The translations under genes and the position numbers were made by a program. A DNA stretch of 64,000 bases from Vitrella brassicaformis CCMP3155. Its lineage: Eukaryota; Protista; Chromerida. The notes below the pieces were generated by a model. It saw only the letters and a list, made by a program, of their open reading frames with translations. It had not been told where the DNA came from and searched no databases. Shown in pieces: positions 32,260 through 54,300 of this stretch. Location: NCBI GenBank assembly GCA_001179505.1, contig CDMY01000113.1, positions 124,001 to 188,000 of the forward strand. Reading direction: 5' to 3'. Each line of letters starts with the position of its first letter. Within the stretch, counting starts at the first letter, position 1.

Positions 32260-33872
32260 GGGACAGCATTCTCGATATGGCTTCGGATGCTGCATCGTAC
32301 GACGTCAGCTGTCAGGTGCAGCACACGCTGTTCAGGCTGTACTTCAAAAACAGACCACCGAAGGTCGTCAAGGCCGGCGAATGCTTCGCTGCTGAGGTAT
32401 GGTGGCAGCATGAAAGACACTGTCGTCTGACTCATCGCATCATGGTGTAGTGCCCTTTGCTGTTTGTTTGTCTATCTGTGGCAGCTCTATCTTGCGAACG
32501 AGCTGGTACGCTTGAACTGACCATTGGGGCCATAGTAGCCTAGAAGAGCATGTGTGTGTGTTCCCGTTCTCGTTTGGTTGTCAGGGCATGAGTCATGCAA
32601 TGGTGCCCTCTGACTCATCATCCACACCATCCAGCAGCAGCAGCAGCAGGCAGTCTGTCGGCCTGCAGCTCACGGCCATCCCATGGACGCCAGTCACTGG
32701 CAGCCATCAATCCCCCGCCCCACCCTGCCAGCTGCATGTGGCTGTCAAGAACCCAAGAGACCTCCTTGTCAGGAAGAGCGGCAGTGCCTCGCTGCAGGTG
32801 GCCATCTACATGATGCCGTCCATGGGCAGGCGGCCGTCTTCTGTGCTGTCCGTCACGGCCGTCCTAGTGGTGCAGGTGGATCCCAAGTGCGTGGCTGGCG
32901 GCGGCATTCTCAGGGCCGCATCGCTGCCATTCACTCTGGTGACCAACAACACGGCGGCAGGAGGGAGTAATGCCCTTGTTGATGCGTGGGATGGTTTCAG
33001 CGGCACTCGGCTGCTCGACCTATCACCCATCGGCCCTCTAGCCCTCATTTTGGAGCAGTCGGCTTACGAGGTGCTCGGGGGGAAGGTGTGGGATGCCGGA
33101 TGGATGGTGGCGGAGTGTTTGCGGCAAGAGGGCTACAGAAGGTTGCTGCATGACCATGATGCTGGAAGGCACGCTTGCCTGGAGCTTGGGAGCGGCACGG
33201 GGGTCGGTGGCATCGCGTACTATCTCAGTGGCGGGATGCGGCAGCCGATGGTCGTGTGCACTGACCTACCTGACGTGATGCCCATCTGTGAGGCCAACCT
33301 CACTCTCAACTTTGGTGCAGGTAATTGATGGATTGCACACAGACGTAGCGATCGAAGGCATGCCCAGTGTGCGGTTTTATCTGTGTGCAGAGTCTGATCG
33401 CAAGGCAGACATTCGCGGCCGCCCTTTGCCGTGGGGCGACGACGCGGCCCTGACGGCCGTCAGTGACGAGTTCGGCCCCTTCTCGCTCATCATGTTATGT
33501 GACGTCTTGTACAACAGCGACAGCTACGGGCCGCTAATCGCCACACTCCGACGAGCCATTGACACCAGCCATCCCCCAGCCATCCTCCTCAGCTACCGCT
33601 ATCGAGACCCGTGTGTGGGGCAATTCTTCCAGCAGCTGGGCGACATGTGTCACATCTATGACATCACCGATGTGCCCCTGCCGGCGGATGAGCGGCGCAT
33701 CGACGCGCCTGAGAGGCTGGCGGCCCCGCGAAGGCGATCCAATGTGCTGCGGGCGGCGCTGATGCGCGCTGGTAGTGATGGTGGTGATGGGTGTGGGGGT
33801 GGGGGGGCTTTGGTATCGTGTGAGGACATCTGGGTGCTGTGGTGCGTGCCACAGTGAGGGAGGGTTGTGTCC
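32260..33872. repeat. Segmental duplication, inverted partner of 56869-58507
   Basis: Exons and introns are near-identical to the reverse complement of 56869-58507 by direct comparison. Confidence 0.92.
32277..33857 (+). CDS. SAM-dependent protein-lysine methyltransferase, METTL21/Methyltransf_16-like, copy 1, with N-terminal extension
   Basis: GGKVWDAG, CLELGSGTGVGG (motif I), VCTDLPDVM, ANL, LPWGD, CDVLY. Exons at about 32277-32397, 32485-32510, 32585-33320 and 33391-33857. Confidence 0.85.
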
Positions 33873-34208: not shown

Positions 34209-34346
34209 TTTGGGACCTGAGAGGCATACAGAAGGCCAACCAAGCAAACTAAAGGACGAATGGACAGGCACCGAAGCCATCTCCCATCTCCCCTTTCCCG
34301 CCTGCCTGCCTGCCTGCCTGCCGGCCTGTCTGTCTGCGTACCCCAG

Positions 34347-34990
34347 TCCCGTCACGTCGCATACGAGTGGCTGCCCAAGGACCTCCACCGAGAGCTCGTA
34401 GCTCCAGTACACGCTCGCTACAACGACGTGACTTTCATCCTCACAACACTGAAACAGACACACCCGAATCCACACAGCAAGTTATGAATCACGGGCCAAG
34501 ATCCATGCTTCTGCGGTGCTTATTTCTTACCCGGCGACGGCTCCCAGGCACAGCAACGTCAGGATGCATAGGAGCTGTCCAAGGACCTCCACCGAGTGAT
34601 CATAGGTCCAATATACGGCGACTACGAGCACGAAGAGGGTCGTGCAGGTGGTGAAGAGGCGGAGGGAAGTGACCTCCATCCTCAGCTGGCCTCCTGAGGT
34701 GGCCTGTACGTCCTCAGGTGGGCGCCAGGGCGGCGCGTCGACGTCCGTCTTGTCGCCGCTCTGCTATCGTTGCCGACCAGTGGGATGCCGATGGTACTTG
34801 ATGACAGCTGCCTACTGAATCTCGATTGAGGGAGCCTTGCAGGGCCGTGCAGATACTGAAGAGGCCGAAGGATGTTGGCTTTATCCTCAGCTGGCCTCGG
34901 ATGCTACGAAGAGCTCCCAAGAGGCAGCTGGTGTCACCGCCGGGTGGCGCGTGGACGTCCCGTCGCTGCTGTCTGTCGATGACGATGGAT
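34347..34990 (-). pseudogene. Three partial copies of the formin 5' region / membrane-anchor exon
   Basis: 34679-34531 translates to MEVTSLRLFTTCTTLFVLVVAVYWTYDHSVEVLGQLLCILTLLCLGAVAG, followed by the same intron as formin intron 1. Degenerate copies at about 34448-34347 and 34990-34830. Confidence 0.75.
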
Positions 34991-35084
34991 ACAGCTGCCA
35001 ACTGAACCTCTACTTGCGGCTCGGCTCAAGGGACTACTCCCTCCTCACGAGCCGCATCGGCGGCACCATGGCGGGGTGCGGCAG

Positions 35085-35290
35085 GGGGAAGTGTCGGGGT
35101 GGTGCTGCTGCTCGTGAGGGTGGCCAGGGGTGGCGGGTTGGTGCTGCTGCAGGTGAGGGCAGGGCGTGTCGGGGTGGTGCTGCTGCGAGGGGAGGGGGAG
35201 GGAAGGGGTGCTGGAGTGGGAGGGGCAGGTGCAGGGCTGGTGGTGGGAGGGGCACGAGCCGGGGGGCGACGTGGGACGGGGGATGAACGA
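35085..35290. repeat. G-rich imperfect tandem repeat (GGGGTGGTGCTGCTGC-type units)
   Basis: Recurrent gtgtcggggtggtgctgctgc / ggttggtgctgctgc units with G-runs. Confidence 0.6.
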
Positions 35291-35457
35291 GATGAGGAGG
35301 CACCATCATCGCCCCACTGCCTCTCGGTCCACTGCCCATCCACATGTCGATGCAGGTGGCCTGGGACCGTCTCGTCAACACTACGAGCGCCTGCATTCAC
35401 GAAGATGTTCTTCCCCCTCAACGTGTTCATCATGTATGTCATCTTGCGTAGTGTACC

Positions 35458-36014
35458 TTCGGTACGTATTCCAGGAGGAGGAAAATGTGTCCACAGTGTC
35501 GGATGGAGCGGTGCAGGCGGACAATGTTGCGGGGATCACACCGCCGGTGCAACTGACACGTTGACAGACGGCACAGGCACACATACACACGGACACATGT
35601 GATGCCGCCCGACCCATGAGTGTTGTCTCTGTTGTGTCGTGTGTGCCCCATCCTTCTCTCCGTACCTCCACCTCGCGCTGCAGCTGGCTGACCATGGCTC
35701 TGCTGGTGTAGTGCTCTATTTCAATCTGCACAGACAGAAACAAACACCCACCAATGGATTTCGGACGGCTCTGTTTCTGTGCTCTGTTTCTATGCGATGG
35801 GGGATTTGATGGTCTTGTGGCGTAGTAGCAGCACTCTGGCGTACGCCCCCGCCTGCAAGCGCGACATGGAGAGGGATCAACATTACATGGCCGATCGGAA
35901 TGCTGCCGTGCACTGCACATTGTGTGTGTGTCGGTCCGCACTTACTCCCAGTATGTGTGTGTTGGGGTTGTGGTGGTCCCTGGGCAGTTTGTACTCTGCC
36001 AGCTCCGCCGGCAC
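35458..36014 (-). pseudogene. Ser/Thr kinase N-lobe fragment (Aurora/CAMK-like) with an in-frame stop
   Basis: Spliced: HILG|AGAYARVLLLRHKTIKSPIA*KQ|IEIEHYTSRAMVSQLQREVE|LHRRCDPRNIVRLHRSIRHCGHIFLLLEYVPK. TAG at 35792-35790. No HRD or DFG found downstream. Confidence 0.7.
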
Positions 36015-36605
36015 CTGAAGGTCGGGCAAGAGCCACAGATACACTGCAGAAAGGCCAGTGGAGCAGCAGATATGAACTCGAGTGCATCTGCCTTTCACGT
36101 GTCATTCTCACCGATGGTGGGCGGCAGCCAGCGTTGCTACGGTTGGAGCCACGTCAGCAATGGGCGACAGGTACAGCATTCATCCCACCATCATGACACA
36201 TGGTAGTACTAACCTTACAGAGGTTTTCTCGAGAAAGGAGAAGACACGCGCACACTTTCCAGACGGTAGTCGCCAGCCGCTCGGGAGAAGGCAAAAAGTC
36301 ACCGGCTGAGGCCTCGGGCCCGGGGGGCACGGCGGTACATGAAGGAAGGGGCAGAGGAGGAGCGGACCGGCCACATGAGCCAACAGACAGCCAGAAAGAC
36401 GAGGGAATGAAGGATCTGCGACTGAAACAAAGGCTGGAGGCGAACAGCGACTGAAAATTGTGGAATAGACTAAAATCGACAGTTTCGCGTCTCCGCGTCT
36501 CGTCGCGAAAATCTCGCCGCACACTCCGCTTCTCTTTAGTTGCAACAACTTCTGCACCAGCCACTTCACTCAATGCCATGCACGCATCAACCCATCCATC
36601 CGCTA

Positions 36606-37769
36606 TCACCAAAACTTGAGTGCCACGTGGCGGCACGCGAGAGCATACGACACACCGCTCCACACGATACAGTAACTGAGCGGAGCACGACACACACAGC
36701 TGGTTTGTGGGTTTGTGGTTGGTTGGCTGGTCCCCTGGCCAGCTTACAGCACGAGTATCGCGAATGCGGTCGCCGGCGGTTGCAGCAGCGTCTGCATGGT
36801 TACATTCACCATACCCGTCAGCTGATTCGCCTGACCGACACAGAGAGAAGCCATGGACGATCGGCGCCACGCCGACTGCAGTGCGTTCCGACCAGTAGAA
36901 AGATGGCCAGCATGTTCTTCTGCACGCCATCGAGAATGAAGATCCGCTGACGACTGCCTGCACAATACATGCAAAGAGCACAACATAGACTACTCGTAGA
37001 TCAGTGGCCGTACCAATGAATAGGTTAGCGGCGAGGCAGCATGCGAGCTGCCAGGAATGGTGGCTCACGCACAACAACACAAAGGGCAGGTTGCTCTGGA
37101 AGACAAGAAGACAGGTATGGATGGATGGATGAATGAGCGTGCGAGCGTCCGCGTACGACGGGCTGCTTACTGACCAGTCTCCTTGACGGCATCAGCCCCC
37201 ATCTCTTGTCAAGGTAGACCACCAAAAGAAACGTCACCACACACCAACTGAACCAGAGGACACACGCACCACTCATTCTCACACGAACAAACCGTCTGTG
37301 GCGTGGTGCGGTGCCCGTGCGGTGCGTGTGTACCCCAATAGCTTGGTCAGCGTGATGCGGGTGGGTGGCGCCCTGACGACAGGAACCGCAAACACACAGA
37401 CAGATAGGTATGCACAGACATCTCCGTGTGTGTCGGCCGAGCACCTTTCCGGTTTGAGGATGCGCCCATGGCCGACGCCAATCAGAAACAGAGACAACAG
37501 ACCTCAACACCACACCGCACCACAAAACGCGCACGTCGATCCGAGAGTAAAGTCGGCGCGCGTAGCCTGTGTCGTGTATTCCTCACTCACCGATACTGCC
37601 CAGAATGCCTTCGCGATTGGCACTGAAGAAAGCTGGAGACACACAGGCAACCATACAAGTCAGTCAACACTTGGTGCAACCAGTCGGAGCGCTCCTGATG
37701 TACATGTTCTTTCGGCATTGAGTATGAAGCCGCCCACACCGCAGTTCAGCACCAACTCGTACACTGCAT

Positions 37770-37800
<31 letters not shown>

Positions 37801-39360
37801 GAGGAGATGCATGTGTGCGGGAAGGAGCCACACAGCAGGTAGGAAAGGTACCCGCAGCTATGATGAGTCCAGCCGCGTCGGCCCACTCGGCGGGGAACAG
37901 ACGATTGACCACCAATGACGAACCTGGCACGACACACATCCCAATCAGCAGACATATATGGCTGGACTCACTGGCCACTGTTGCTGTACCTCCCCACCTA
38001 ATGTCACCAGGGCGATAGAGAAGAAGAAGTTCCAGTGGACACCGTACTCAGAAGTGGGCACCTGCACACACACGACACGCCCATGGCGGCATCCGTTTAG
38101 CCGCGCCGCCGTCCTTTCTCATGCTCACGTGGTAGTCGACGCCCCACACGAGGATCAATCGAATGGCGCCCAGCAGTAGGAGGGGCCACAGGCTGTAGGC
38201 TGTCACGCGAAGGGACGTTGGCGCTCTGCTGCCTGTGCAGCACACGCAAACACAGATGTAAAGCCACACAAAGCCACACTAATGCGTATGGTGCCTAAGT
38301 ACCTCTGGCAGCTTTGGAAACCATGCCGCCCGCTAGGGTGAAGAAACCGACGCCCCCGTCCATCTGACGGAACAAGAGCGTGGACAACGCTCATCCACGG
38401 ATGGATGGAGGGGAGAGGCGGTATGTTAGCCCTCAATTACTCACCACAGAGAATCCGTAGTTTTCAGTCTTGGCGAGCCGCCGCGGGTAGATGAAAAAGT
38501 CGACCGCAAGAATGGCTGACACATCCATCCATCCATCCATCCATCGGTATTCCGATCTTAAAGATCTGCCGGCGAACCAATGTTTGTTCCAATGGCGCCA
38601 ACAGCCCGATAGTCAGATATGTAGCACGGACGCCTGTAGAATCCACACACATGATCCAGGCACAGCCTTGTGTGGCCGTCACAGCCTTCATTCTGCTCAC
38701 TTTGGCTCTGCACAATGCGGCCGCGTTTCAGCTGACCTTCCTTAGGGAAACACACAACACAGACAAACAGACAAAGAAACAAACAGGCAGGCAGGCAGGC
38801 AGACGGGAGCATCAACCAAGAGCAAAGTGCCGGTCTCTCTTCGACTACTTGTGTGCGTACCAGAAGTCGCTCGTGCGGAAGATCCGTCCATCAGCACCAC
38901 TCGAGGCCTTTCGCCTCTCCGTCATGACAGCAATGGCGACCACGCCCAGCTGGCCGCACATGACGCTCACAGACAGGCGAGGCGCACAGAAGAGCACCAG
39001 CAGCGGCATCACTACCGCAAGGAACTCCAGTACAAAGCGGAGCACAAGGGAGCTCGGCCACCGCAGCAGCACCATGAGGGCGTGGCAGAAGAGAATAGAC
39101 ACCTGCAGACAGACAAGATACCAACCGGCACACGCACACAAGGGAGGGAGAGTGAAACACCGTCGTGTAGCTTTTGGGTGCCTCACTGCTGGAGATGCGC
39201 CGATGAGGAAGAGTTCCAGGTGTGCTGCGCCGGTCTCGTTGACATATGCCGTCTGCTGGATCTGGCTGTACTCATCCCTGGACACTCTGGTGCGGCAGAC
39301 GCCATCATCAGGTGACAGCGCCACAGAAGGGCATTCGAACCATTCATGAATGAAACTCAT
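36606..39360 (-). CDS. PIGW: GPI inositol acyltransferase PIG-W / GWT1
   Basis: Spliced family motifs: AILAVDFFIYPRRLAKTENYGFS, MDGGVG, SEYGVHWNFFF, PSRRL, NMLAIFLL|ANQLTGMVN, and C-terminal LKFW-stop at 36606. Confidence 0.92.
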
Positions 39361-39433
39361 TGCTATAGCATCTACAAACCTTACTGGCTCTCACGAGATC
39401 CTCAGCGCCTCAGATCTCGAACGTCATTCGAAT

Positions 39434-39467
39434 TTGGAAGCAAGCTCGCATTGGAAGCAAGCTCGCA
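39434..39467. repeat. Perfect 17-bp tandem duplication (TTGGAAGCAAGCTCGCA x2) in the PIG-W/formin divergent promoter
   Basis: Read directly from the sequence. Confidence 0.9.
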
Positions 39468-39643
39468 TTTCGGAAACTCGTTTTTGGCCCTGCAAGGCTT
39501 CTTAGTCGAGGTTCAGTAGGCCGCGGAGTCAGCGGAACCAGAGAAGAAGCCATCGGCTCGACAGAAGAGCGGCGACAAGACGTCGACGCGCCGCCCTGGC
39601 GGCCAGAGGACGTTAGCTCTTTAGCCTCGGAGGCCTGGTGAGG

Positions 39644-40958
39644 ATGAGGCTAACGTCCTTGGGCCTCTTCAGCACCTGCACGACACTGTTCGTGCTCGTA
39701 GCCACCGTGTACTGGAGGTTTGAGCACTCGGTCGAGGTCCTCGGGTACCTCTTATGCCTGCTGACATGCCTGTGCCTGGGAGCCATCGCTGGGTAAGAAA
39801 TATGCACCGCAGAAGCATGGATCTTGGCCCATGATTCATAACTCGTTGTGTGGATTCGGGTGTGTTGGTTTCAGTGTTGTGGGGCTGATGTGTGACATCA
39901 TACGGCCACCAAGCCGTGTCTCTGCCCACCCGCCAGCCCATGGCGTCGCCAGCAACACGGTTCCGCTTCAGACGAGCCACCTCGCCCACGGCACACCCAT
40001 CCTCTGCTCGCACAACCCGGGCACAGACGTCATGAGCGTGAGCAGCACCCACCGCACCATCGCCACCTGGACAGCACCGCTCACTCTCACCCCACAGCAC
40101 GCGTCACCCACCTCCGGCAACGTCAGCAACACAACTGCTCTCTCCTCTCCCGCTGTGCCCGAGTCTCCCCCACGCGCCGTCGGCCAGCCCGACGCAGAGG
40201 GGTTCTACGACGCCATGAGTGCCACCAAGGCGTCGGTGGGCTGCCAGGCGACCTACCTGTGGGTGGCACACCGTGGCAAGCAGGAGAAGGCGCAGACCGT
40301 CAAGGGGCGGGAGGAGGTGCAGGACCCGACGGTCCCTACCCCATCGCCGCAGCGGCAGCAGCGGCCACCGTCCAAGGACAAGAGGAGGAGCACCAGGGAG
40401 GGCGGCATCGGGGCGGACGTGCGGCGCCACAGCAAGATAGCGGACATGGCTGCCTACTTCTTGCCATTCCTCGCCAAGCAACTGGGGGTCAAGAAGCTCA
40501 AGGACCTTCCCAACACACTCACCGGTCTGGCCAAGGCGGTGGCCAACCAGGACAAGACGGACACCAAGACTGACAACAAACACAAGCCCGCCAGTCCCCC
40601 CAAGCAGACCACCCAGCCCCAGCCCGCTCCCGCGGCGGCTGGCACCGACACGGCCACTGCCAAGAAGCCCGCTGTGGCCAAGCCCAAGAACGGCATCCCT
40701 CCCCGGCCCAAGGGGAAGCTGCCCCCTCCCCCGCCGCCCCGGGGCAAAGGTCCGCCCATCAAGAAGGCGTCGGCTGCCAGCAGCGGTGCGCTGGTCAAGG
40801 CCAAATCGGCCGGCGGCGCGGCCCTCCCGCTGGGCAAGAAGCTGCACGTCACTAGCATACCTGACGATAGGTTGGAGAAGTCTCTCTTCAAGGTGAGTGA
40901 GGGGAAAAAAGGGCGGGTGCGAAGCGAAGCGGGAGGGAGGGAGATGAATGAATTGTTC

Positions 40959-40989
<31 letters not shown>

Positions 40990-43900
40990 GTGTGTATAGG
41001 AGACAGCGTTGGACGAGACCAAGTTGCGGATGGTGTTGGATATGGACGCCTTGCGGTCGGTGTTTCGGCCCGACCCGCCGGCCAAGCGGCAGGAGACGAA
41101 GCCGCACCACATTGCCGAGAAGGACCGCACTCAGCCACAAAAGAAGAAGATCCTCACTGACGGACGCGCACAGGTGGGCGTGAGGGAGGGAGGGAGGGAG
41201 AGGCCCACACCCCACGACCACACAACACCGATACCCGCAATGTTCCTCTATGTGCACGTGTGTGGTGCAGAACCTGTTCATCACCGTTCGCCGGCTGACG
41301 TACAAGCCAGGCATCCTGTGCAACCAGATCCTGCTGCCGCTCAAGATTCCCCTCAAGCTCGATGCCATCGCACCCACCATGCCGACCCCCCTGGCCATCC
41401 TCACGCAGCCCAACCACACCCCTCCGCCCCAGGCCGCCCTGCCGGAGGTGTCCGAGTCCCTGCGGTGCAGCGGCAGTGTGGTGTCGTTTGGCGCCCCGTC
41501 CAACAGGGGCAGCGAGCAGCGGGAGGGCGACCGCGAGTTGGGTTTGTTGCTGTATCGACTGCGGGACATGGTGTGTGGTGAGGGGGAGAGGAAGGCGTTT
41601 GAGCAGCTCAAGAGGGGACTGGCGGAGGACATAGAGCGTCTCAACCAGGCATTCCTGTGCCAGGTGGGTGCATCAGGCGGGATGGATGGACGTGAAGGAC
41701 ATACTCTATCCCTTCTTGTGGCCATCGTGTGTTGCGTGCAGGAGGAGATTACAGCGTTGAGGGCCTACGAGGGGCCCCTTAATGAACTGCGGGAGATGGA
41801 GCAAGAGGTACGTCACACACACAACACTCACCTGAACACACACTACGGAGGCCCGCCCTCTCACTCTGTGGGTGTGGTGCGAGTGGTGATGTGTGCAGCT
41901 CCTCCCATTTGCGTACGTCGAGCGGCCCCAGGCGCGCATATCAGTGCTGGAGATCGCTCTGACTGTCGAGCCTCGTTGCGCCGAGGTACTCAAGGAGATC
42001 CAACGGCTGCAGGAGGCATGCAAGCAGGTAACACACAGACAGATGAAGCAGACAGCAGCACGCGCCACTCCACCCCATACATTCTGTGTGTGTGTGCAGT
42101 TGCTGAGTTCCGATAGTCTCAAGCAGCTCTGCCACTTCTGCCTCCACCTCATCAACTGCATCAACGGGCACACAGGCACACAAGCCAAGGTACGCACATA
42201 ACACCAACCCCCCCCACACACATCACAACACATGTCTGATGTATGTGTCCATCCATGCAGGCACCTAGTGACACGAACCACCCCTTTGGGCCCTCTCGCG
42301 CCCTCCCGCCGTCCAGCATCCCCCGTCCACCATTCACAGCAAAGTCCAAGCTGCCACCCCCACCTCCGAAGGTGCGGCCGCCCAACCACTCTGCGCGCAA
42401 GTCGCCCCCCACGCCACGCGAGGAGCTGCCAACACGGATCCCCGGGCCCTCCGCCACCACCAAGGCCAAGAATGGCGGTGGCGCGGCCAGCACTGCTATT
42501 AATGGCGGCAGAGAGGTGCATGGCGGCATCCGGGGTTTTCACCTGGGCGATCTGAAGAAGTTGGCGGATTACAAGGACAAGCGTGGCAGCACCAAGGTGA
42601 CCCTGCTGCACGCTGTGGTGTGTGCGTTGACCGAGGTGGCGTACCAGCGGGAGGGGGGGAAGGGCATCGATACCAAGTGGCAACAACAGCAACAGCACAA
42701 TGTCGACCAGGCGGTGAGAGAGACGCACAGGAAATGGGTGGGCGTGTCCATGGACAGCGCATCACAATGAATGCTGTGTGTATGTCGCAGGATGTCTATT
42801 CGGATATGGACGCGTCGCCGTCATCTAGTCGTTTCGGTTGGACCCCCCAGAGGAAGGCCGAGCTGCCTTTCCCCCCGTTCGTCACCAAGCTCAAGGAGGA
42901 ACTGGGCACCCTCAGACTCGTCACACGGGGGCTAGGAGGTGCGTGACACCAACACACTCACTCACATACAAACACACGTCGATCCATCACATGTGTTGTG
43001 TTTGTCTTCCTTTCCTTCAGAGGACATCGACGGCCGTCTGTTGGAGCTCAAGCAGTCGCTCAAGTTCCTGGAGAAGGAGATATCCATGCACGCCCGATCA
43101 TACCGCCCCACGGCAGTCAACCTCTCGCCCACACAGATCACCAGCACCCCACCTCCCGTCATCCCAATGCACCAGCCCGTCTTCCACCAGCAGAGCAAGA
43201 CACCTGCATTCGGTGAGCAGAGCGCCACGCCGCGCAGCCCGCCCATGAGCATCCGGATTGTCGAGGCGCCGAAAGACCCCGAGAGCCCCACCCGGCTCGC
43301 CAAGCCAGCCGTCAGTCCATCGCCCTCTCCAGATCTGCTGTCGCCCATCCCTCCCAAGCCCACCAACCAGCAGCTGAGCGGCGCCGAGGCCATATCGCCC
43401 GATGCTCTGTCGCCTTTGCGTCAGCCGTCCCCCTCCCCTCTGCAGAAGATGGCGGCCATGTCGCGTGAGGCCGCTGCGATGGCGGCCAAGATCAAGTCGC
43501 CCAGGGACTCGATGCAGTCGGTGGCGTCCATGGCCAGCGCCATGAGCGGCGGATCGGCCGATGGGGGGCTGTTGGAGATAATTGAGGAGGGAGAGGGAGA
43601 AATGGAGGGGATCACCAAGCGGGAGAAGAATGCACTGGACCGACTGATTGAGCTACATGACTATGGTAAGACAGGCAGCTAAGCAACACTGCACACCGGA
43701 CCGACAAGAGGCCCTTGCCTTGGTGTGTCTCTGTGTTGTTTGTTCCTTCAGTTTCTGGCCAACTCAGTGAGATAACGTTGCAGTATGACGGCGTGGTCAA
43801 GGCCTGCCGTCGTGTCCTAGAGTGGTGCGCCGAGGAGGAGCCCTCCGACATCGCACTCCCCCACCCGCCTCCCAAGGCCACTGCACCCACCGAGGGCGGC

Positions 43901-45144
43901 AACGGCGGCCCCGAGACGACGGGCGGTGGCGCGAGGGATGAGAAGAAGGAGACTAAGATCACCAAGAAGAACCTGCAGGTGCTCGACTCGGCCTCACGGC
44001 TCATCATCATGACCACTGACCTAATCAAAGCGTTTGAATCTGCCTGGTCAGCATGGAGAGCCACATGCGGGGGAGAGGGAAGATGTGCCGTGCTGATTGG
44101 TTTGGTTGTCTTGTCTTGTCGGTCTTCGTGTATGTGTGCAGGCGTGACGTGATCCGTTCGCCGGCATCGTATGAGAGTTTGGTGCCCACTGCGGGCTTCA
44201 TCCGGCTGCTCAAGTTGCCGTCCCCCCCGCCAGCCAGAGCCCGACTCTCGCGCACTCCCAGGACAGCCATCAAACGACCAGCTCGCGAAGTACGCATACA
44301 CACCACACACAACGCGACACACCACACAACACAAAACCCGCGCTCACGTGCTCTTTGTGTGGTTGCCGAATGTTCAGCTGACGCCCCAGACGGCCCGCCC
44401 GTTGTTCGGTGACAGGTGCAGCAACAACTCGGTCGAGGACCGATTTCCCGTGCCGTTCGCCCTTCCCCTCGCCCAGCAGCAGGAGTCCCCCGCCATCCGT
44501 GTGGACGGTGCTGGTGACATCGACGAGCACCCGTCGCCCGAGGTGCCGTCCAAAAGCCGTCGCGTGTCGTTCGGCCCCAGCAAGATCCCTCTCCTGGACC
44601 TGACGCGACTGAGTGCTGCTGAGGCGGCCAAGGGCGGGCAGGTGGACGGGGGTGGCGACGAGGCGGCTAAGCTGCGCATGTCAGTGCCTTCACTGGTGCA
44701 AGCCTTCAACAGAGGGGCGGCACTCAGACCTCCCAACGCATTCGCTTCTCGCATCGTAAGCAAACATGAGGGCAGGGAGAGAGGGGAGTGATGACTCCCA
44801 TGCATCCCTATCTCTGTGTGTGTTGTGTGTGTGTGTTGACTATACAGCCGGTGCGTGTGACTCCCCGAGACGAGAGCCGCCGTGCGCCCCTGCAGATGTC
44901 CCCCCCGCCCCAGGTGTTCAACATAGCCGCCAGCGACACCGACCAGGGCCGGGAGGAGCTGCCCGAGTGGAAGGACCACTTCTGGTCGCCGTCCGGCAAC
45001 CCCAGTGCGGCCGCATCGGCATCGGCGTCTGCATCGGCATCATATCCGGCGTCGCGCACCGTGAGCCACATGGAGAGTGAGGTGTCGGGCCACATGGAGA
45101 GTGAGGTGTCGGCGGAGGACCCTGATGCGGCCGAGGCCGACTGA
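39644..45144 (+). CDS. Formin (FH1 poly-Pro + FH2) with predicted N-terminal membrane anchor, multi-exon
   Basis: FH1 KLPPPPPPRGKGPP. FH2 landmarks: KKLHVTSIP, LDMDALRSVF, ILTDGRAQNLFI, INCINGH, IRGFHLGDLKKLADYK, TLLH, KFLEKE. First exon 39644-39792 splices in frame (intron 39793-39874) to ORF 39831-41183. Confidence 0.85.
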
Positions 45145-51335: not shown

Positions 51336-54300
51336 TCACTCCTTGCCTCCTTCATCACCGCTATGCTGAGACTCAGTTACGTCCTCTACGCGGACGACAG
51401 TCTGGTTCTGCTTGCTCTTGATGCGGGCACCTACACTACCACCTGCCCCTTCACCGCTACTGTCGCTAGTGTGTCTGTCGTCCTCTGTTGCCCCGCCAGC
51501 ATCAGGAGCGAAGCCCATGCCGTAGTAGGCCAGGTCACGCATGTCGTCGCTCAAATCAACCGCCACCGGGGGCCTCTGAGGCGCGCACACACACACGGCC
51601 CAATGCAATGTCTGTGTGGGGTGATGGTGGGGGAGGTGTGTTGGTCTTCGTTGCTCACTCACTCCGTCGTAGAAGACCAGCTTCTGCTGCGCAACGGGGA
51701 GGCCGAAGAGCCGCGCACAGAGCGTCTTGAGATCTCTGCGCACCGCATGCCATGTAGCACCAAAACACAGGGTGAGAGCTTGGCCGAGAGAGAGATCATT
51801 GTACCTGACGAGGAGTGTGGACGGGAGTTTCTTGGTGATGGGCGGCTTGTGGATGATCGAACTCGCACCGGCCTCCAACGTCACACCTGAAGAAGGCACA
51901 GAATACTTACATGCTGGCGCGAGCCTATGCCTCCGATCATTGTGTGGGATCCGTTTCATCAGTACTGATGAGTGTTTGCGCGATGGTCTGCGGCTGCCCC
52001 GACGCCGACGACACTGCACACACACGCAAACACGGGATGAAATTTGCTCGTCCGTCGCGGGGTGGGGTGCGCACCTACGAGTACTTCTCCATGGATTTCC
52101 CTCAGGCGCTTCTCGTTGACACCGCCCTGACACGACACACGCGCACACACGGACACAAATCAATCACGTGACATGCAGCGCAGCACTCGCACTGTGGTTG
52201 CCTGCCTGCGAGTCTGTTTACCCTCTCCTGTGGGTCTAGCTGCTTGACGGCGGGGTGGCCCTGTACGGCCAGCGACAGGAAATACCGCTCCGCACTCGTA
52301 CGCTCGCGCGAGTCCACCTGACAGGGAGGGGTAAGATACTGAGCAGACTGTGTCTATCCGTGTCTGCTCACCTCGCCGCCGTTGAGGCTCCTCAGTTGCG
52401 GCAGCATGGCTATCAACAACTGAGAGCAGCAGGATACATACCATGATACGAGTTGCCTCACAATCATCAAGCCTCGAGTGAGTGGTTCCCTCACCTGTCT
52501 GGCCAGTCTGAGTCCGCCCTGCTTTGCGTCCTCAATGATGGGGTTGTGCTGCAGGCGCAACACACGCAGCGAGCTGAAGGCCGCACACACCTCACCCAGA
52601 CTACTCCTGGCCATACAACACATGCACGTGGCGCGAATTTAGACAGCCTGCTGGTGTGGTGTGGTGTACTCACCAGTCCTTGATGCAGTTGTCTTCGAGC
52701 GAGAGCACGGATATGCGCCCGAAGACCGCCTGCACACCGGGGGTCGTGCCGAGGCATGATGACTGGGATGCCCCAGCTTCGCCCAGCCGGTTGTGGTTCA
52801 GCTGCAGTGCCTCCAGGCTGCACACATAAACGAACGAACACCACAAAGAGTGATCTCGTCTCTAATCTGTGTGTGTGTGTGTGGGGNNNNNNNNNNNNNN
52901 NNNNNNNNNNNNNNNNNNNNNNNNNNNNNNNNNNNNNNNNNNNNNNNNNNNNNNNNNNNNNNNNNNNNNNNNNNNNNNNNNNNNNNNNNNNNNNNNNNNN
53001 NNNNNNNNNNNNNNNNNNNNNNNNNNNNNNNNNNNNNNNNNNNNNNNNNNNNNNNNNNNNNNNNNNNNNNNNNNNNNNNNNNNNNNNNNNNNNNNNNNNN
53101 NNNNNNNNNNNNNNNNNNNNNNNNNNNNNNNNNNNNNNNNNNNNNNNNNNNNNNNNNNNNNNNNNNNNNNNNNNNNNNNNNNNNNNGGGGGGGGGGGGGG
53201 TCTGTTTGCTCGTCTGTTTGCTCGTTATACCTGTCCATGTGTTGCAGCTGCAGCCTGTCGAAGAAGTCCCAGCTGCTGATCAGATTGTCGTCCAGATCAA
53301 GACACCTCAGGCCGCCAAGGTGGCCCTCCACATGAGGCCCCTTCTGCTGTGTGACGGTCTCCCCCAGCCTGTTTAGCTTGAGATGCAGCTCACGCAGAGA
53401 GGGGAAGTGGCCTGACACGCGACACACCTGACACACATACCCAGCACGCAGACGCACGGCCACACACATAAAGGAGCTAGCTAAGTCATCCACCCGTTGT
53501 GCGCCGACCTCAGTCCACTTGATGTGTGTGCCGTTGAGTGAGAGCATCTCCACTGAGGGGCAGCTCACGTGTCCCTCGGAGGACTCGTCGATGGCTTTGA
53601 ATCGGTTGCGGTTGAGGCTCAGGGACCGCAGGTTGGGCATCGACTTTGCAATACGGAACACCTCGCGCCAGTCGCACAGCAGATTGTCGTCCAACACGAG
53701 CACCGACACGTCTGACGTGGCAGAGAGGGAGTGAGAGAGGGTTGAATGGATCAATCGTGCGCCACAAGTGTCTGATGGATGGATGGCCTACTTCCGAGTG
53801 TCGATGGGTGTGTGAGGCCATTTGATGCATCGCCTGCGGCAGGTTGCTGGCATGGCAGTGATGCGGTGCTGATGCTGCAGTTGTCGAGCAGCAGCTCCTC
53901 GAGGTTCTCGTAGTGGGAAAAGTACTCCCGCGCCTGACGTCACAACAAACACACAAGTGGGTGCCGGTGTGATGAGATGACGATCCTTCTTCTCCCTGCC
54001 TGCCTGCCTGCCTGCCTGCCGGTCTAAGTGCGCACCTTATCTTGCCCGACGAACTGCATGGGTTTGGTCCTGCTGGTCTTGGCATCTACCACCGTCAAGT
54101 CACCCTCCACATCTGACAAATGACATCCAGCAAACGCCACGCCATGGCATTCGCATCAATCAATCGAGTCCTTCTACTGTCGCGTGCCGTGGCTGACCTT
54201 CTCCCTGCATGGCGTATTTGTCCACCAATGCGCTCAGCAGATCCCGACCGCCAGACACCTTGCCGGGCTTGACGAACGACGCTGCCGTGTGTGGGTGCTG

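Follow-up and report, generated by a model that had tools for sequence, protein, structure and literature searches.

The window analysed here, 64,000 nt of the chromerid Vitrella brassicaformis CCMP3155 (assembly GCA_001179505.1, contig CDMY01000113.1, positions 124,001 to 188,000 of the forward strand; G+C 59%, compared to published values of 58% for Vitrella and 49% for Chromera), contains an expressed formin gene whose first exon encodes most of two hydrophobic helices, H1 and H2, and is spliced in frame onto the exon that leads into the formin homology regions FH1 and FH2. The hydrophobic two-helix N-terminus on this formin is real. Its best explanation, which we hold at a probability of about 0.7 with both of the topologies discussed below included, is that it would anchor the protein stably in a membrane and leave FH1-FH2 in the cytosol. 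The exon, its leader and its intron also form a duplicated cassette, a feature that the first-pass annotation of this DNA did not contain. To examine transcription, contigs of four public runs (X1, X2, X3 and X6, from four studies) were aligned to positions 34300-40299 of the window. The 5' features of the gene are as follows.

39479..39643, plus strand: AUG-free 5' leader of the formin transcript, taken from the start of X6 record 18
39644..39792, plus strand: exon 1, the anchor exon (sequence; RNA splice; hydropathy; AlphaFold2; ratio of nonsynonymous to synonymous substitution, dN/dS)
39793..39874, plus strand: intron 1, 82 nt, GT..AG, spliced out in the X1 and X6 contigs and kept in X3
39875..40892, plus strand: exon 2 (open frame; RNA contigs directly over 39874-40299; 3' end predicted)

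Exon 1 opens with the start codon ATG at 39644-46, which has an A (a purine) at -3 and an in-frame TAG upstream at 39614-16. It encodes M1 to G50 (codon 50 by its first two bases), comprising H1, the loop RFEHSVE and most of H2, while the end of H2 (VVGLMCDII) is encoded by exon 2. The last exon base is 39792, at the donor GCTGG/GTAAGA, and the intron ends at the acceptor GGTTTCAG/TG, so that exon 2 begins at 39875. The two exons join in phase 2 and give the product ...CLCLGAIAG-VVGLMCDIIRPP, which runs into the long open frame listed as open reading frame (ORF) 39831-41183. A sequence scan of 39431-39643 found zero ATG, and AUG 39644 is the first AUG in the known formin transcript. The first-pass annotation had proposed this ATG, the upstream TAG, the donor and the acceptor, and all four were found in the sequence where it had placed them. 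The end that it gave for the element, 41183, has to be revised, as this is the end of a mechanical ORF. Exon 2 most likely ends at 40892, at the predicted donor AAG/GTGAGT, with the next exon (41000-41173) in a different frame, and the remainder would be intron read-through.

Runs X1, X2 and X6 are RNA-derived, since at least 14 CT..AC introns of the minus-strand neighbour gene were removed in them. Run X3 behaves as DNA, being unspliced across intron 1 (records 12 and 13) and lacking any splice joint of the neighbour gene. Formin contigs spliced at the junction were obtained from X1 and X6. In X1 record 3 (1463 nt), 39570-39791 is joined to 39874-40299, and the two parts are neighbours in the record (1242-1463 and 816-1241). 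In X6 record 18 (1554 nt), 39479-39791 is joined to 39874-40299 (record coordinates 1-313 and 314-739); no RNA contig reaches further upstream than 39479, which is not a mapped start site. These coordinates are one base off 39792/39875, since a single G can be assigned to either side of the joint. The in-frame splice onto the formin ORF, which had been predicted from the letters alone, is thus seen at the exact junction in contigs of two independent studies, and the DNA-like run is collinear across it. Both spliced contigs continue for 815 nt past 40299, and therefore past FH1 (40693-40758) and the start of FH2, whether that extension is spliced or not. The depth of X6 at 39700-39899 was 10.2 compared to 17.4 in the flanks, the value for a contig without the 82-nt intron. 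Since the dip matches an intron-free contig, an intron-retaining or internally started form was not assembled. Exon 1 is constitutively spliced in the available RNA, and we regard the exon, the splice and the reading frame as virtually certain.

The spliced N-terminus reads MRLTSLGLFSTCTTLFVLVATVYW-RFEHSVE-VLGYLLCLLTCLCLGAIAGVVGLMCDII-RPPSR. H1 spans residues ~3-24 and H2 residues ~32-56 (LGYLLCLLTCLCLGAIAGVVGLMCD), with the 7-residue acidic loop RFEHSVE between them. The maxima of the Kyte-Doolittle 19-mer mean were 1.69 for H1 (residues 4-22) and 2.56 for H2 (residues 36-54), and zero other windows reached 1.6 in the partial protein model of 1,186 amino acids (aa). On the Hessa biological scale, the best 19-mer of H2 has a summed energy of -2.5 kcal/mol and that of H1 one of +0.85 kcal/mol. 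For the exon-1 peptide, with a paralogous cassette copy as the second row, AlphaFold2 predicted helices at 2-26 and 30-48 with a break at the polar loop (mean predicted local distance difference test score 78). As a chance control, ATG-started, stop-free 60-mers were taken from all six frames of the window, and 3 of the 707 had a comparable pair of hydrophobic segments. A search of the ESM Atlas with the anchor exon returned no look-alike, the best score being 0.76 to an unnamed cluster. On these measures H2 is strongly hydrophobic, clearly insertion-competent and a predicted transmembrane (TM) segment, whereas H1 is marginal, as is typical for signal peptides or for the weaker arm of a hairpin. 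The description of two hydrophobic helices around a short polar loop is borne out by hydropathy, by the predicted helix-turn-helix and by the purifying selection on the peptide described below.

The flanking charges were read with the positive-inside rule. The N-terminus is positive (Met-Arg), the loop RFEHSVE has a net charge of -1 and the sequence after H2 a net charge of +1. Since these charges fit the rule, a hairpin with both ends in the cytosol is the favoured topology. Cys12, 38, 42, 44 and 56 are located within the helices or next to them. Cys56, which would be juxtamembrane on the cytosolic side, is a plausible candidate palmitoylation site, as are the Cys-rich helices.

The first alternative to such a hairpin is a type I protein, in which H1 would be cleaved off as a signal peptide and H2 would remain as the only TM helix, acting as a stop-transfer sequence. 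After cleavage the protein would have only ~10 luminal residues (VYWRFEHSVE), with FH1-FH2 cytosolic; it would still be a membrane-anchored formin, and would be the closest match to plant class I topology but without an ectodomain. H1 lies at the extreme N-terminus behind Met-Arg and is less hydrophobic than H2 (1.69 vs 2.56), as such a signal peptide would be. The small residues at its end (V-A-T/V) are, by eye, compatible with the -3/-1 rule for signal-peptide cleavage. Against this, the hydrophobic stretch of H1 is ~20 residues in one continuous predicted helix of 25 residues, which is long for the h-region of a signal peptide, and the flank charges fit the hairpin. We therefore consider the type I arrangement unlikely. 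In either topology, hairpin or signal peptide plus TM helix, FH1-FH2 is predicted to be cytosolic.

The exons downstream of intron 1 were modelled. Intron 1 is the only RNA-verified intron of the formin, and the introns downstream of it are predicted. The features of this part of the gene are listed below.

40693..40758, plus strand: FH1 core GIPPRPKGKLPPPPPPRGKGPP, from translation, directly upstream of the FH2 start motif
41000..44046, plus strand: FH2 domain of ~10 exons with its start in exon 2, from unique or best in-frame GT..AG solutions
41000-41173, 41271-41663, 41742-41807, 41899-42027 and 42100-42189, plus strand: predicted FH2 exons (first five)
42261-42713, 42791-42938, 43021-43665 and 43752-~44046, plus strand: predicted FH2 exons (last four)
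41899..42027, plus strand: FH2 exon matching PF02181 profile positions 155-192 (E 0.055, 13 bits)
42480..42680, plus strand: part of an FH2 exon, with GGIRGFHLGDLKKLADYKDKRGSTKVTLLH, matching PF02181 profile positions 214-253 (E 8.3e-4, 19 bits)
44047..45144, plus strand: C-terminal tail, in open segments with several possible introns; likely stop TGA/TAA after ...DAAEAD at 45142-45144

The model is stop-free over 1186 aa, and the protein probably has at least ~1,190 aa and a length of ~1,400 aa; 3' of ~44046 several exon structures are equally good. Exon 2 encodes 339 aa, namely the end of H2, a linker of ~270 aa, FH1 and the start of FH2 (GKKLHVTSIPDDRLEKSLFK). The linker is rich in Ser, Thr and Pro and poor in acidic residues, and no Pfam family was found on the 450-aa ORF covering exon 2, even at E 0.1. 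FH1 (GIPPRPKGKLPPPPPPRGKGPP, residues ~324-345) lies ~25 residues before the start of FH2 and is short, with one main polyproline track that is a putative binding track for profilin-actin. It is followed by LPLGKKLHVTSIPDDRLEKSLFK.

The predicted FH2 is divergent, with Pro/Ser-rich loops inserted between conserved motifs. A 30-codon exon between the two Pfam-matching FH2 exons reads SDSLKQLCHFCLHLINCINGHTG (LHLINCINGHTG) at the site of GNxMNxG, part of the FH2 motif L..L..GN.MN.G. A lasso-like GKKLHV..I and the string ILTDGRAQ/NLFITVRRL were seen by eye in the predicted FH2. In the ESM Atlas, the ten best named look-alikes of exon 42261-42713 were all FH2 clusters (score 0.80), which serves as a lead only. 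Two exons match the same one of 24,736 Pfam families in the correct order, so a chance origin of the matches is very unlikely. With the polyproline FH1 followed by these two collinear PF02181 matches, the gene is assigned to the formins, in agreement with the initial assignment of FH1 and FH2.

Pfam searches of the whole mechanical ORFs and of most single exons gave no match; we attribute the absence of a score for most single FH2 exons to the divergence of the domain and its interruption by Pro/Ser-rich loops. A phmmer search of the FH2-bearing stretches against the PDB gave only noise (transcobalamin and KIF7, E ~1). Among regulatory and targeting regions, Drf_GBD, Drf_FH3 and Drf_DAD had no Pfam match on the N-terminal or C-terminal pieces, and TPR and PTEN-C2 had none in the 339 aa of exon 2. 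No Pfam family was found in the C-terminal tail. By eye, the tail contains at ~44690-44735 (plus strand) the string SLVQAFNRGAALRPP, which has no Pfam match and resembles a WH2/DAD-like actin-monomer-binding motif.

The anchor exon is also part of a repeat. The segment 39486-39888 covers the leader, exon 1 and intron 1 and reaches 14 nt into exon 2. Its inverted homologue lies at 34846-34435, with 82% identity over 338 nt by blastn. This homologue is one of three copies, spaced ~205 nt apart, in an array ~5 kb from the formin anchor exon.

34344..34977, minus strand: degenerate inverted array of the anchor cassette, copies A-C (repeat finding, blastn, tblastn, alignment)
34840-34977, minus strand: copy A, leader and 12 initial codons, with ATA in place of ATG
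34435-34846, minus strand: copy B, leader, intact 50-codon exon, donor, intron and acceptor
34344-34457, minus strand: copy C, partial exon with an internal deletion

The frame of copy B (MEVTSLRLFTTCTTLFVLVVAVYWTYDHSVEVLGQLLCILTLLCLGAVAG) has the same donor and acceptor as the formin and meets a TAG 10 codons past the acceptor. No upstream ATG was found on its strand back to 35037. When the formin exon was compared with copy B, 17 of the 32 differences fell at third codon positions. The resulting dN/dS of 0.39 (p 0.02) is a pairwise average over 49 codons against a single local copy that is probably decaying. Both exons have retained the same hydropathy. Such a pattern is expected when purifying selection acts on at least the formin copy as a coding sequence for a hydrophobic peptide.

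The similarity between the formin cassette and copy B is uneven. Positions 39766-39888 differ from 34435-34557 at 13 of 123 positions (~90% identity), in contrast to 73 differences in 280 columns (~74% identity) for 39486-39765 against the inverted copy (p 3e-4 for the contrast). Intron 1 alone is 92.7% identical to the intron of copy B, compared to a difference of 36% at the synonymous sites of the exon. The better-conserved intron possibly marks a recent gene-conversion tract or a constrained intronic element. A structured RNA in the intron was considered and rejected, as there was no Rfam match and the fold z-scores were 0.06 and -0.93.

Coverage of the array was zero in X1 and X2 and reached a depth of 7-10 in X6. 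The alignment of X6 record 14 begins exactly at 34531, the last base of the copy B exon, with 47 letters placed elsewhere. This suggests transcription of copy B and splicing from the corresponding donor. Its product, if translated, would be a 60-aa two-helix microprotein. Two other origins for these sequences were rejected. The inverted copy is not the head of a second formin, as a stop codon closes its frame 10 codons past the acceptor and the end of a convergent methyltransferase gene lies ~500 nt on; no formin-like sequence was found after the array. Nor is the anchor derived from the adjacent multi-TM GWT1 gene, since a tblastn search of the window with the anchor peptide found the cassette copies only. 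Duplication, at the DNA level, of a cassette of leader, exon and intron is the probable route by which the anchor was gained or spread, without connection to the plant class I formins.

Just upstream of the array lies a Pro/Ser/Thr-rich ORF (35026-35442, minus strand) with a 39-nt tandem repeat at 35091-35204. An X6 contig covers 35049-35431, and no Pfam family was found in this ORF. The cassette array might lie in its 3' untranslated region.

A second alternative to a membrane tether is that the formin has no stable anchor. Translation would then start effectively from downstream, for example at Met103 (40031), or exon 1 would be a transient, tolerated 5' cassette, or a targeting or degradation signal instead of a tether. 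In favour of this reading, the cassette has been shown to be mobile or duplicated, and the remaining copies are in decay. Searches of protein libraries gave no match, so that no orthologue shows the anchor; H1 is marginal; and selection is measured by one average over only 49 codons. On the other side, ATG 39644 is the first AUG, with a purine at -3 and a frame uninterrupted to FH1, and the X6 depth of 10.2 vs 17.4 leaves no alternative contig over the intron. The third-position bias, and the hydropathy that both copies have kept, point to selection on the peptide. Taken together, we consider the absence of a stable anchor improbable.

Several observations weigh against stable anchoring or against parts of the gene model on which it stands. 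The contigs define neither the transcription start nor isoform proportions. H1 is Ser/Thr-rich as well as marginal in hydrophobicity, and the dN/dS depends on the one local copy. No single FH2 exon reaches the Pfam gathering score of 34.8 bits, the best having 19. Exon 2 (339 aa) had no orthologue in a word-based protein search, and an exhaustive HMMER search against 1.84 billion representative proteins gave 0 matches. The latter search returned no self-hit either, and therefore the proteins of this genome are not in those libraries.

With these points considered, anchoring through H1 and H2 remains the preferred interpretation, and the following is in our judgement its probable mechanism. Exon 1 would supply an N-terminal membrane anchor of two hydrophobic helices, with H2 as the transmembrane segment and H1 as the weaker hairpin arm or as a signal peptide or signal anchor. 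Everything past residue ~58 would be cytosolic, that is the flexible linker of ~270 aa, the short polyproline FH1 and the divergent FH2. The FH2 dimer would nucleate and elongate actin filaments at the surface of whichever membrane the anchor enters, with the barbed ends held there. A very improbable alternative is that the N-terminus sends the whole protein into the endoplasmic reticulum, the secretory pathway or the complex plastid. Residues 60-150 are rich in Ser, Thr, Pro, Ala and His and transit-peptide-like; they include just two acidic residues, as well as the sequons NVS and NTT, and bipartite targeting signals are normal in chromerids. Against this, H2 is the most hydrophobic segment and would return the chain to the cytosol, either as a stop-transfer sequence or as the second arm of a hairpin. 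A formin in the lumen would also be without its substrate, since actin and profilin are found in the cytosol.

In plant class I formins, a signal peptide is followed by an extracytoplasmic Pro-rich domain, a single TM helix and FH1-FH2 in the cytosol (PMC2386819). Their ectodomain is often O-glycosylated and is thought to bind the cell wall (PMC2386819, PMC11194305). The Vitrella formin resembles class I members such as AtFH1 and AtFH5 in having an integral-membrane segment, here a predicted one, N-terminal of cytosolic FH1-FH2, and both have a Ser/Pro-rich low-complexity region. In contrast to class I, it has two hydrophobic helices 7 residues apart, and neither an ectodomain nor a clear cleavable signal peptide; its Ser/Thr/Pro-rich region would be on the cytosolic side, and its lineage is alveolate. 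The combination of an extracytoplasmic domain with a single TM helix that defines class I is thus absent from the predicted protein. The plant class-I-like architecture claimed in the first-pass annotation holds in a loose sense, as a predicted TM segment ahead of FH1-FH2, and fails for the ectodomain, with a cleavable signal peptide not clear either. The likeness is probably due to convergence, and, given the taxonomy, this FH2 is unlikely to group with the class I clade.

Outside plants, Grunt et al. (2008) listed putative TM formins in Helobdella, C. elegans and Naegleria, four predictions in all (PMC11194305). These were later withdrawn by the authors, and the current records have no signal peptide (PMC11194305, Box 1). 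As in those cases, the signal or TM segment of the Vitrella formin is predicted, whereas its helix-bearing exon has transcript support. According to a 2024 review, there is no evidence that integral-membrane formins exist outside plants (PMC11194305, Box 1). In the literature searched here, no transmembrane formin was reported from a non-plant, in line with the earlier remark that none was known to be described in chromerids. Our surprise is tempered because Grunt et al. noted that short signals of this sort could evolve convergently.

Both chromerids are reported to have homologues of FRM1 and FRM2 (chromerid genome paper, PMC4501334). The Vitrella formin shares with the apicomplexan and chromerid FRM1, FRM2 and FRM3 its myzozoan lineage and a divergent FH2 with low-complexity insertions. 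It differs from FRM1 (TPR) and FRM2 (PTEN-C2-like) in that exon 2 has neither region by Pfam, and the protein has a hydrophobic anchor instead. It also differs from diaphanous-related formins, whose GBD/FH3 and DAD Pfam domains were not found on the pieces searched. Among animal formins, INF2-CAAX is prenylated at the endoplasmic reticulum and FMNL is N-myristoylated. These are likewise formins held on a specific membrane, possibly with acylation common to both, but they are held by lipid modification or phosphoinositide-binding domains and do not span the membrane, in contrast to the predicted membrane-spanning helices here.

Two neighbouring genes frame the formin and the cassette array.

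36448-39430, minus strand: GWT1/PIG-W glycosylphosphatidylinositol inositol acyltransferase gene, at least 16 small exons (spliced contigs; PF06423)
32552-33857, plus strand: lysine methyltransferase gene (PF10294, Methyltransf_16), at least 2 exons, convergent with the cassette array

PF06423 matches three consecutive exons of the GWT1/PIG-W gene (best E 1.8e-7, above the family cutoff), and the structure of this gene, with introns of 56-120 nt, is fully backed by spliced contigs. It is arranged head to head with the formin, and its 5' end lies ~50 nt from the known 5' extent of the formin. Because of this short distance, the two genes probably share a bidirectional promoter. Depth spikes at 37100-37299 and 38700-38899, present in all four runs, coincide with GGAT/CAGG-type microsatellites and are no expression signal, since short microsatellites attract many unrelated contigs. 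The window also contains an assembly gap of 300 N at 52887-53186.

Formin N-termini set where actin filaments arise in the cell, and integral-membrane formins are currently taught as a plant-only, cell-wall-linked invention. Our broader proposal, which we advance tentatively, is that this is the first transcript-supported integral-membrane formin outside plants, that it arose independently by capture of a portable cassette copied elsewhere in the genome, and that one copy may yield the free-standing 60-aa microprotein. If this is true, transmembrane formins are not a plant synapomorphy, and a minimal hairpin without an ectodomain suffices as a tether, giving a freely rotating membrane-bound nucleator. 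A transcript-supported example from a free-living relative of malaria parasites would mean that the architecture has more than one evolutionary origin and can do without a wall-binding domain. It would offer a natural minimal example for the effect of direct membrane insertion on a formin, for instance on rotational freedom and on targeting by the secretory pathway. The duplicated leader-exon-intron cassette illustrates, concretely and on a small scale, one way of acquiring an anchor of this kind. For apicomplexan biology, it would add a third way, besides TPR and PTEN-C2 regions, of positioning actin nucleation on membranes.

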